DNA of 64,000 nucleotides. It comes from Leidyana gryllorum EB-2025a. Lineage: Eukaryota; Protista; Apicomplexa. Every line of letters starts with the position of its first letter. The first letter of the stretch is position 1. This document shows, piece after piece, positions 19,847 to 46,062 of the stretch. The DNA lies in contig JBLWGC010000002.1 of assembly GCA_048772705.1 (NCBI GenBank), positions 62,001 through 126,000 on the forward strand, given 5' to 3'. The notes under the pieces are model-generated. The model did no database searches. It had not been told where the DNA came from and was given only the letters and a program-made list of their open reading frames with translations. Made by a program: the position numbers and the translations under genes.

Positions 19847-22276
19847 ATGACAAGCCGACCTCACAAACCTCAGCAGTCTGTCCGCAGGTCTCCATCCACC
19901 GTATGGACATCTCTCGCCTATGGTTTGATGGGAGGGTCCTGGTACACGGAGAGTTGGGTTGCGGGGGATGGCAACCCGGATCTCAGCTTTATGCACACGC
20001 CGTCATCCGAGGGGACATCTGCTACATTTCACCCAGAAGCGGTTTGGCAGTATTTGCAGAGCATCAACGCCGTTGCCACCAATTACAGAGATTTGACAGG
20101 ATACGTCGAACTTTGCTTGTCAACGGACGTATGGAATGTGGTTCATAACGGCGGCTTTGTGTATCTTGGCGACCGTGAGAACCAGTTCCCCACTTTGCGA
20201 GCTACTCATTGCACATTGGACCCGGAAAGCCCCAATGGCCACTTGCAAGTGAAAATGACAATGGAGGATGTCTTGGAGTCGGTTGCAGCTCTCAAGAGAG
20301 CAGAGGATGCTGCGATTGAGGAAGAAGAAAAAATGCTAGCTGAGATATCAGAAACTGGGGTATCACAGAGAGAGCCAATGCCTTCGACAACTGCTGCTTC
20401 CGCTGCCTTCAGCGCAGAAAAGACTATTCCACCACGGCGTGTGCCCAAAACGCGAGCGGGACCGCAGTTTGATGTCTTCTCACCCAAGGACTGGACAAAG
20501 CACAGGTGGTGCTATCTGAGTAAAATCGTGTCAAAGCTCAGCAGAGCGATTCTCTTGAATGACAATTTACCGAAAACGCCTCTGATGGAGGTATTGTTGG
20601 AGAGGGTGTTCGTTGTCATGGACGCTGCGGAGAAATCCAAGGAGTTTGTGGCCAATGTCCTCGTCGAGCTCCCTGATTATCGGTTGCCCAGCAGTAACGA
20701 CCTATACCGTCAAAAATGGAGGATGGTATTCACATGCTTCACTCGAGCCCTAAGTCGATATCTGAGTTGCCGCCGAGAAGGTTCGTTTCCCCTATTCTGG
20801 AAGGAGGCGGTGGGATTGTTGACACAGAGACTTTTGAATGAGGACGAAGCACTGCAGATCACCTGCGCCCGCATGGTGAATCAGGACTTTAGTGAGCATG
20901 GATTCCTGTCATTGATTACCTCGGAAGCATTGATGGACGAGAACGTCAAGACTCCGTGCGTGGAGATCGAGGTGGGCAAGGGCACCCTGCCCGCAGAATC
21001 AGGAGGATGTCCCATGAAATTGATTCGCAAGCGGATTGGAGACAAGTGGGTCGGCTATGCTGTCATCTCTCCCAATACACAGTCGACCAAGTTGCTCCGG
21101 CCCAAAGTGATGCTCATCAAGAAACTTGAGGGAAAGGAGATCACAGTGTGGGGAGGTATATGGTCCGGCAACGATTGCGTTGAGTACGTCAATGAGCAGT
21201 GTGTGGGCCATTGGCTGTCATTGGAAGACTTTGACTCCATCGAAGCGCATTACGAAAGAACTCCCGAAGACGCAATGGACACTGAAGAGTCTCCCACAGA
21301 CAACTCCAGGCCGCGCAAACATACTTTCTTCCTGAATAATGCCCAGGAGGGGCAGGTGGATGAGGGTTGGAGGACCCTCAGGCGGACTCCGAGAAGTTTT
21401 GAAGGTTTAATCACGAGAATGTTCGAATGGCTCGACAAGTGGCCCAGAGAGAACGGGGCTATTCTGAGCACTCTGAGGTCTCAGTGGGCGACAATTAAGG
21501 CTACACGGAACCTCGGTAGGATCAGGAAGTTCCACAACAAGATTCGAGGATTGGTATTGATAAACAATTATTTGCGGACCGATACCTATCACTTGAATAG
21601 TGATGATGAACGGCTGTACAGTATCGACCGTGTCCTCCGTCGTCACAGTCCGCACCCCGGTGAACAAGAGCTCTACTCCGACTGGCGTGACGCCATTGCA
21701 GAGGCAATGCCAAGCACGCCATCTTCAGGCTTGCCGGTTCAGGTGAAGAAACCAGTGCCAAAAAGGAAGCAAGTTGACGAGATAACGTCAGTCAGCAGCA
21801 AGCGACGTTCTGCTCTAATCGGTGTGGCCCGAGGAAGCGAGACGGTCCAGCAAGCAGCATCATCATCATCATCAGCAGCAGCAGCAGCAGCAGCAGCAGT
21901 GACACAGCAGTCGCCCCCTCGCTCGAATCACTGCACGCCTCAGACTCCCTCAACGCCTTGTCAAACTCTCTCGCCTGCTGCTTCACGAGCCTCTTCGAAG
22001 GTCTCGACACAGAATGAGCCCAAACTCCTCCTCTGCAGACGACTGGCTGAGAGGCCGATAAATATTCGGAAGTCTAGACTAATGCAATGGCAGGAAATGG
22101 CCGGACTTCAAAGCGCGCCTGAGGAAGCCGTTTCCGACCAGCCCGAAGGCGTTCAACAGCTGGTAACCCTCCAAGGTATGTTGTCCCCGCAACCTCCTCA
22201 TCCGCAGCCATCGATCCTCCGCCACTTGTTGAAGCCCCCACAAGAATCATTGCCAAATAGAGGTCTCAGTACATGA
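19847..22276 (+). CDS. Array paralog P1 (809 aa), unknown family
   Basis: Leader MTSRPHK...WTSLAYGLMGG; core KLIRKRIGDKWVGYAV...KKLEGKEITVWGG...GHWLSLEDFDSIEAHY; tail contains ILRHLL. Confidence 0.9.
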   Translation: MTSRPHKPQQSVRRSPSTVWTSLAYGLMGGSWYTESWVAGDGNPDLSFMHTPSSEGTSATFHPEAVWQYLQSINAVATNYRDLTGYVELCLSTDVWNVVHNGGFVYLGDRENQFPTLRATHCTLDPESPNGHLQVKMTMEDVLESVAALKRAEDAAIEEEEKMLAEISETGVSQREPMPSTTAASAAFSAEKTIPPRRVPKTRAGPQFDVFSPKDWTKHRWCYLSKIVSKLSRAILLNDNLPKTPLMEVLLERVFVVMDAAEKSKEFVANVLVELPDYRLPSSNDLYRQKWRMVFTCFTRALSRYLSCRREGSFPLFWKEAVGLLTQRLLNEDEALQITCARMVNQDFSEHGFLSLITSEALMDENVKTPCVEIEVGKGTLPAESGGCPMKLIRKRIGDKWVGYAVISPNTQSTKLLRPKVMLIKKLEGKEITVWGGIWSGNDCVEYVNEQCVGHWLSLEDFDSIEAHYERTPEDAMDTEESPTDNSRPRKHTFFLNNAQEGQVDEGWRTLRRTPRSFEGLITRMFEWLDKWPRENGAILSTLRSQWATIKATRNLGRIRKFHNKIRGLVLINNYLRTDTYHLNSDDERLYSIDRVLRRHSPHPGEQELYSDWRDAIAEAMPSTPSSGLPVQVKKPVPKRKQVDEITSVSSKRRSALIGVARGSETVQQAASSSSSAAAAAAAAVTQQSPPRSNHCTPQTPSTPCQTLSPAASRASSKVSTQNEPKLLLCRRLAERPINIRKSRLMQWQEMAGLQSAPEEAVSDQPEGVQQLVTLQGMLSPQPPHPQPSILRHLLKPPQESLPNRGLST
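21853..21899 (+). repeat. (TCA)n/(GCA)n triplet runs encoding poly-Ser/poly-Ala in P1
   Basis: Directly visible. Confidence 0.85.

Positions 22277-46062: not shown

Follow-up and report, generated by a model that had tools for sequence, protein, structure and literature searches.

In Toxoplasma, the dense-granule effectors GRA16, GRA24 and TgIST reach the host nucleus after being routed into the secretory pathway by a signal peptide, and several of them are cut at a TEXEL site (RRL). In the Hairy/HES repressors, a C-terminal WRPW recruits Groucho; Groucho/TLE is an animal protein, and we know of none in the apicomplexans. The feeding stages of eugregarines are largely extracellular, and to our knowledge no exported effector has been described from them. 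Among the large branches of the apicomplexans the gregarines have been studied least, in their communication with the host as in the regulation of their own genes. For the TashAT and SVSP effectors of Theileria, which act in the host nucleus, a signal peptide together with FAINT, AT-hook and NLS elements are the defining features (PMC2826314), and the apicomplexan host-nucleus effectors described for Theileria are largely disordered (PMC11237503).

Consider now a stretch of 64,000 nucleotides from Leidyana gryllorum (the window), in which a sequence-only reading had seen an array of paralogs and taken them for parasite effectors that mimic host transcription factors. The genes are real and under selection, and they are without classical secretion signals and without detectable relatives. 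The best explanation, which we put forward tentatively, is that they encode soluble adaptor or regulator proteins that act inside the parasite, a function suggested by their architecture.

Layout of the array and its Ty3/gypsy insert

Positions 19847-46062 of the window hold, on the + strand, eight intact intronless paralogs (P1 to P8; 597-959 aa) and one decayed fragment, which agrees with the eight genes and one pseudogene counted before. Each intact paralog is one uninterrupted open frame on the + strand. For P3, P5 and P6 the start is taken to be the ATG aligned with the family leader; the GTG or TTG with which the mechanical ORF opens is disregarded. The features are as follows.

19847-22276, + strand: P1, 809 aa; in a clade with P2; tail without the WQPW end, with GLPV and LRHLLKPP.
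22460-25339, + strand: P2, 959 aa; long A/S/T/P-rich insert from N-domain to module; end MWQVWTPK; one AT-hook-like RGRPK.
25548-27383, + strand: P3, 611 aa from the leader-aligned ATG (mechanical ORF from 25500); short tail.
27830-29623, + strand: P4, 597 aa; most divergent of the eight; tail motifs and those of the C-terminal helical hairpin both lost.
29868-32153, + strand: P5, 761 aa from the family ATG; tail end LWQPWRDN.
32624-34762, + strand: P6, 712 aa; mosaic of P7-like leader and beta core and P5-like tail.
34939-39869, + strand: Ty3/gypsy LTR retrotransposon between P6 and P7, not belonging to the family.
34939-35117 and 39691-39869, + strand: LTRs of this element, 100% identical.
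35530-39669, + strand: its ORF, with gag (zinc knuckle), protease, RT, RNase H and integrase in one frame.
40037-42286, + strand: P7, 749 aa; the reference; three PIPQQVPP repeats; end LWQPWKDD.
40997-41383, + strand: beta core of P7, six strands and a terminal helix in the AlphaFold2 model; most conserved part of the family.
42930-43620 (approximate), + strand: pseudogene remnant with leader, part of the N-domain and start of the module; three frames, truncated.
43660-46062, + strand: P8, 800 aa; five LQLEPQPGPSG repeats; LVDLLRAP; end LWQPWKDF.

In the remnant, each of three frames holds one piece (leader, AAVWDRLW block, WPRSEPLRVVLE block) and the remainder is missing; its N-domain block is closest to P8. 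The neighbouring Rad51 and PAPS-synthase genes are divided among several ORFs, which is consistent with splicing, and the contrast that had been drawn between an intronless family and spliced housekeeping neighbours holds. The eight proteins can be aligned over about 520 N-terminal residues (alignment A2), with a mean column identity of 39% and pairwise identities of 23-58%. This alignment bears out the common leader and core described earlier, including the quoted motifs KLIRKRIG..WVGYA, KKLEG.EIT.W.G and HW[IL]SL..F..IEAHY.

The element between P6 and P7 has the LTRs, the target-site duplication (5 bp, GCCCC) and the order of protease, RT, RNase H and integrase by which a Ty3/gypsy retrotransposon is recognized. 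In its ORF, Pfam finds RVT_1 (2.9e-31), RT_RNaseH (7.9e-31), Integrase_H2C2 (7.5e-15), gag-asp_proteas (3.1e-10) and rve (7.1e-10). At least 15 more matches to the LTR occur in the genome, 100% identical across the matched stretch. From the identity of the two LTRs, the GCCCC duplication and the identical LTRs elsewhere follows that the insertion is recent and intergenic. The sequence-only reading had called the array TE-associated. The element is indeed there, but its insertion is incidental and does not explain the array.

Protein architecture, short motifs and the search for relatives

The proteins appear to form a lineage-restricted multigene family of a gregarine-like apicomplexan, and each is a soluble, modular protein of four parts: a private basic N-terminal peptide, an N-domain of about 100 residues, a module of about 340 residues, and a quickly changing, predicted disordered tail rich in P, Q and R. 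In P7 the leader covers residues 1-30, the N-domain about 60-156, the module 184-522 (with the beta core at 321-449) and the tail 523-749. An acidic, S/T-rich linker, much enlarged in P2, joins the N-domain to the module. The folded part amounts to about 500 residues in all members, including a beta core of about 110.

For the module, AlphaFold2 gives a pLDDT of 83.3 and a pTM of 0.82 (82.0-83.3 over the five models), from an alignment of 10 sequences from one genome. The model has a helical bundle (18-141), the strands of the beta core with short helices (144-235), and a helical hairpin (272-333). When the beta core is modelled alone, the same secondary structure is obtained, with a pLDDT of 83.8 and a pTM of 0.78. 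The core is therefore a confidently predicted folded domain, and the novelty that had been ascribed to it agrees with the lack of a fold match to this model; with just 10 sequences behind the models, the absence of a known fold is to be taken as provisional. The further suggestion that the core binds nucleic acid finds no such agreement. The pI of the beta core ranges from 5.4 to 9.3 and is mostly acidic to neutral, which means that the core is not a basic domain, whereas the leaders have a pI of 9.3-12 and most tails one of about 9-11. No ApiAP2 or other DNA-binding domain or fold was found in the family by Pfam, PDB profile search, Foldseek or VIA (core), and the only AT-hook-like string is the single RGRPK of P2. 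By eye, the N-domain resembles the beta core (SDG ... S-x-E-D-L), but its derivation as a diverged duplicate was rejected at a profile-profile probability of 0.5% (E 0.11).

The tails are 95-270 residues long, barely alignable and, as had been described, of low complexity and rich in motifs. Four short motifs recur within them where nothing else can be aligned. GLP[VIM] follows directly after the module in seven of the eight members. P5, P6 and P8 share R-P-x-P-Y-[DH]-R-[VI], of which P7 has a weaker form, VPY. L-x-x-L-L-[RK]-[AP]-P is found in P1, P2 and P8 and so spans the two major clades. At the C-terminus, [LM]-W-Q-[PV]-W closes five proteins, as WQVW in P2 and as WQPW followed by three residues in P5 to P8, and is missing from P1, P3 and P4. 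Exact tandem peptide repeats are also present, as listed for P7 and P8. That the motifs are kept across paralogs with saturated dS argues for functional docking sites, and we regard them as putative sites of this kind. The LWQPW[RK]D end we take to recall the WRPW with which Hairy/HES repressors end. The proposed mimicry of host transcription factors has the tail motifs as its one support, with a binding that is predicted from them.

The claim that the family matches nothing described has stood up in every collection searched, and in none of them did the core match a known transposase or housekeeping family. For all eight proteins Pfam, taken up to an E of 1, returns no family, only chance-level rows with E above 0.01. 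With the A2 profile, HMMER searched 1.84 billion cluster representatives, which do not include the proteins of the Leidyana genome, as is seen from the fact that the window's own proteins were not returned. The search gave two matches, both judged spurious: they are repeat proteins (CARD-like and EF-hand-like), aligned in many stretches to the linker of low complexity or to one short helix. A profile search of PDB sequences gives nothing below E 0.4. The ESM Atlas yields no usable match by feature search with the module or the N-terminal 165 residues, and a TM of at most 0.29 by shape search. Foldseek against the PDB reaches a best E of 0.56 with the module and of 0.28 with the core, and the best E in BFVD is 0.06. 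The best structural rows are generic helical bundles, such as designed three-helix bundles, CheA P1 and PHIST. Among JGI metagenome and IMG/VR contigs pattern matches were seen, none of them confirmed as a relative, and a literature search on gregarine orphan families and effectors returned nothing relevant. Provisionally, then, the family is without detectable relatives by sequence or predicted fold. Close relatives may be unsampled, and the orphan status may stem in part from the thin sampling of gregarines.

Distribution in the genome, descent and selection

The genome assembly that was searched comprises 15.5 Mb in 237 contigs. In it the family profiles A2 and A3 match only the array, with its eight genes and its remnant, and a single gene on contig C104. 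The gene on C104 (L010:673-3621; 982 aa) carries two copies of the whole module in tandem and a long unconserved region; its leader is of the same kind, with a basic stretch followed by W-S-x-L-I-x-Y-x-L-S-S-G. When the leader by itself serves as a profile, the same ten loci and no others are matched genome-wide, the next best match having an E of 0.45, and a DNA pattern for W-Q-P-W-[KR]-D hits the C-termini of P5 to P8 and no other site. The leader and the C-terminal motif are thus confined to the family, which means that neither is a targeting signal in general use in the organism. Upstream of the ATG, at about 20-35 nt, the family members have a T-run in common. As a family-specific promoter it was rejected, because a similar T-run with CACCTG also precedes Rad51, so that it is probably a general feature of the genome.

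In the module tree the two C104 modules lie together, apart from the array, and the branches measure 0.4-2.1 changes per site. The array itself falls into (P1,P2) and (P5,P8,(P6,P7)), with P3 and P4 separate; the closest relatives are physical neighbours, as is expected under tandem duplication. Synonymous sites are saturated in most pairs. In the N-terminal 500 codons of unsaturated pairs, dN/dS is 0.52 for P1-P2 (dS 0.86), 0.43 for P5-P6 and 0.65 for P6-P7, and in the beta core it is 0.27-0.34 in old pairs (P5, P6 and P7 against P8, and P5 against P6 and P7). The beta core is under purifying selection, with a dN/dS of about 0.3. The helical parts and the tails diverge faster, the tails with a dN of about 0.8-1.1, and the family shows no sign of global positive selection. 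The description of the array as fast-evolving therefore applies to its saturated synonymous sites and to the overall dN/dS of 0.3-0.65, but not to the beta core.

The leader and beta core of P6 are nearly identical to those of P7 (94-100% in columns 600-700, with a dS of 0.18; leader dS 0.05), while its tail is 86-100% identical to that of P5. From this mosaic of a P7-like front and a P5-like tail gene conversion is confirmed. The family is old and native, with a fold under purifying selection and tails that diversify. It has grown by old tandem duplications, with copies born and lost and with partial homogenisation by gene conversion.

Possible roles and comparison with described systems

If the proteins act within the parasite, they would remain in its cytosol or nucleus. 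The conserved folded part would supply a common activity or bind a common partner, while the diversified tails would recruit differing partners through short linear motifs, as in families of adaptors and transcription co-regulators. P/Q-rich tails with LxxLL-like and proline motifs, together with a basic N-terminus, would fit nuclear co-regulators.

The main alternative sends the same proteins into the host as effectors. By non-classical export through the leader they would reach the nuclei of host gut cells and there recruit co-regulators by their tail motifs, for example with the WRPW-like C-terminus acting on Groucho/TLE and LxxLL on nuclear-receptor partners. A diversifying tandem array with disordered, motif-bearing tails is what this alternative leads one to expect, as is a terminal [AG]LWQPW[KR]D, resembling the WRPW of Hairy/HES, that is conserved in P5 to P8 despite the high dN of the tails around it. 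The leader, however, does not look like an export signal, as had been proposed. The most hydrophobic 12-mer in the first 60 residues (Kyte-Doolittle) scores 0.88-1.32 in all eight proteins, so that by hydropathy there is no signal peptide; on the same measure the signal peptide of a VWA/integrin-beta-like neighbour (17559-18785) scores 2.39. Nor is there a transmembrane segment, the highest 19-mer anywhere reaching at most 1.48 (Kyte-Doolittle). A conserved PEXEL or TEXEL is absent: the sole RxLx[EQD] is in P5, and RRL is limited to P5 and P7, both strings lying within a conserved helix motif. Pfam detects no FAINT or other effector-associated domain, and the leader is found in no other gene family. 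With this polar, family-only leader and a core that is not basic, the sequence-based grounds for proposing export are removed, and with them those of the effector interpretation, although non-classical or recessed signals would be compatible with the hydropathy results. Moreover, the feeding stages of eugregarines are largely extracellular, with no exported effector that we know of, and about 500 folded residues under purifying selection are unlike the mostly disordered effectors known. That the TashAT and SVSP effectors are also arrayed and disordered (PMC2826314; PMC11237503) speaks for host-directed effectors, which on the whole we consider unlikely. The fullest version, in which this would be the first gregarine effector family, leaving independently of a signal peptide by its N-terminal peptide, hijacking host co-repressors and co-activators with WRPW-like and LxxLL-type motifs and built on an unseen alpha/beta fold, is distinctly unlikely.

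The leader could also be a presequence for import into a mitochondrion-related organelle, its first 30 residues being basic, hydroxyl-rich and acid-free. Its net charge is +2 to +5, no D or E occurs before position 32-40 in seven of the eight members, and the leader of the C104 paralog is likewise basic and without acidic residues. Presequences, however, are rarely conserved residue by residue, whereas the pattern here, M-x-S-R-x-H-H ... W-T-x-[LF]-V-Y-x-L-M-S-G, has invariant W, L and G and a (near-)invariant M-S-G at saturated dS; long P/Q-rich disordered repeat tails are in addition atypical of matrix proteins, which leaves organelle import very improbable. Least credible is that the genes are selfish and self-amplifying, derived from a domesticated TE, a viral protein or a drive-type family. 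They are intronless among spliced neighbours, they have been amplified in tandem with one dead copy, and an active LTR retrotransposon lies inside the array. But Pfam, BFVD and IMG/VR give no TE or viral similarity, the genome holds one array and one dispersed gene in 15.5 Mb, and the retroelement came recently and between genes. The codon composition, too, is that of the host: GC3 is 0.57-0.63 in the family, 0.62 in the neighbouring PKS and 0.61 in the VWA gene, unlike the 0.72 of the Ty3 element, and a foreign origin of the family was dismissed on this ground. What probability then remains beside the adaptor or regulator role inside the parasite falls to other functions, for instance a structural one, cytoskeletal or tied to a particular stage.

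The family offers a confidently predicted module without a relative in sequence or structure, and its N-terminal peptide and conserved short motifs are found nowhere else. As proteins of the parasite's interior, the paralogs would represent a new class of regulators or adaptors; as proteins delivered to host cells, they would be the first effectors of a gregarine, with an export route that needs no signal peptide. Whichever applies, tandem duplication, gene conversion and the death of a copy can all be seen clearly at this locus of a compact genome. Orphan families are common among poorly sampled protists, and what the array proteins do is wholly inferred.

In comparison with described systems, the family shares with GRA16, GRA24 and TgIST of Toxoplasma disordered, repeat-bearing regions and short motifs, which in those effectors engage host regulators. 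It differs from them in having neither a conserved signal peptide nor a conserved TEXEL, and the feeding stages of Leidyana are not known to be inside host cells. With the Hairy/HES repressors it has in common a W-x-P-W within the last eight residues, with hydrophobic residues before and basic ones after it, conserved in contrast to the surrounding tail. Here, however, the second position is Q and not R, three residues follow the motif, WQPW is present in just four of the eight members with WQVW in a fifth, Pfam detects no bHLH or Orange domain, and the binding would be that expected from sequence resemblance. In genomic arrangement and composition the family resembles TashAT/SuAT and SVSP of Theileria, which are likewise lineage-specific, clustered, mostly single-exon and rapidly diverging, with proline- and glutamine-rich, partly disordered products that carry NLS-like and other short motifs (PMC2826314, PMC11237503). 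TashAT and SVSP proteins, however, have a signal peptide and FAINT, and the TashATs have AT hooks (PMC2826314), whereas the Leidyana family has no signal peptide, no FAINT match and one AT-hook-like string, in P2, and each of its proteins is for the most part a conserved folded unit.

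A family member outside the array

Outside the array, the genome contains only one further member of the family, a gene on contig C104:

L010:673-3621 (L010 being a stretch of C104), corresponding to G000:C104:1035045-1037993 in the genome assembly, + strand: paralog, single ORF, 982 aa

The encoded protein begins with an N-terminal leader of the same kind as that of the array proteins, and carries the whole module of helical bundle, beta core and helical hairpin twice, in tandem. It has neither the P/Q-rich tail nor the WQPW end, the C-terminal motif of the P5-P8 tails. The C104 gene may be the ancestral, non-arrayed form of the family.

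Genes flanking the array

14639-15712, + strand: ORF
17559-18785, + strand: single-ORF VWA-like gene, directly upstream of the array
46318-47460, - strand: ORF
47599-49464, - strand: ORF
53097-54971, + strand: Rad51, several ORFs
55187-56964, - strand: bifunctional PAPS synthase (ATP sulfurylase and APS kinase), several ORFs
62245-63390, - strand: ORF

The product of the VWA-like gene has a clear signal peptide, an integrin-beta/VWA-like domain by Pfam (E 1.4e-05) and a stalk that is rich in T and P and has a Cys-rich end; these features make it a candidate secreted adhesin. The same gene served as internal control for the appearance of signal peptides in this organism. Rad51 and the PAPS synthase are each divided among separate ORFs, which is consistent with introns in both genes. 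About 40 kb separates the PAPS synthase from the polyketide synthase at 51-14567, which ends in a sulfotransferase. Pfam gave no match for any of the four other flanking ORFs (357-621 aa), one of which has an S/P-rich, low-complexity N-terminus; many genes around the array are without assignment.

The LTR element and a T-run upstream of start codons

34939-39869: Ty3/gypsy element between P6 and P7, with identical LTRs and a GCCCC target duplication

The polyprotein ORF of the element is intact (1379 aa), and a long (TG)n microsatellite (~34842-34928) adjoins the insertion site. At least 15 other LTR matches across the genome, on contigs C230, C220, C47, C202, C35 and C7, are 100% identical to its LTR over the matched stretch, and the element therefore looks recently or currently active.

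In the family genes and in Rad51, a T-run of 5-11 nt and, after it, G/C-rich bases (GGACTG or CACCTG) lie 20-35 nt upstream of the ATG:

22460, 25548, 27830, 29868, 32624, 40037 and 43660: ATGs of P2 to P8
53097: ATG of Rad51

The C104 paralog likewise has a T-run at the corresponding position, and this genome may use the run generally as a core-promoter or transcription-start element.
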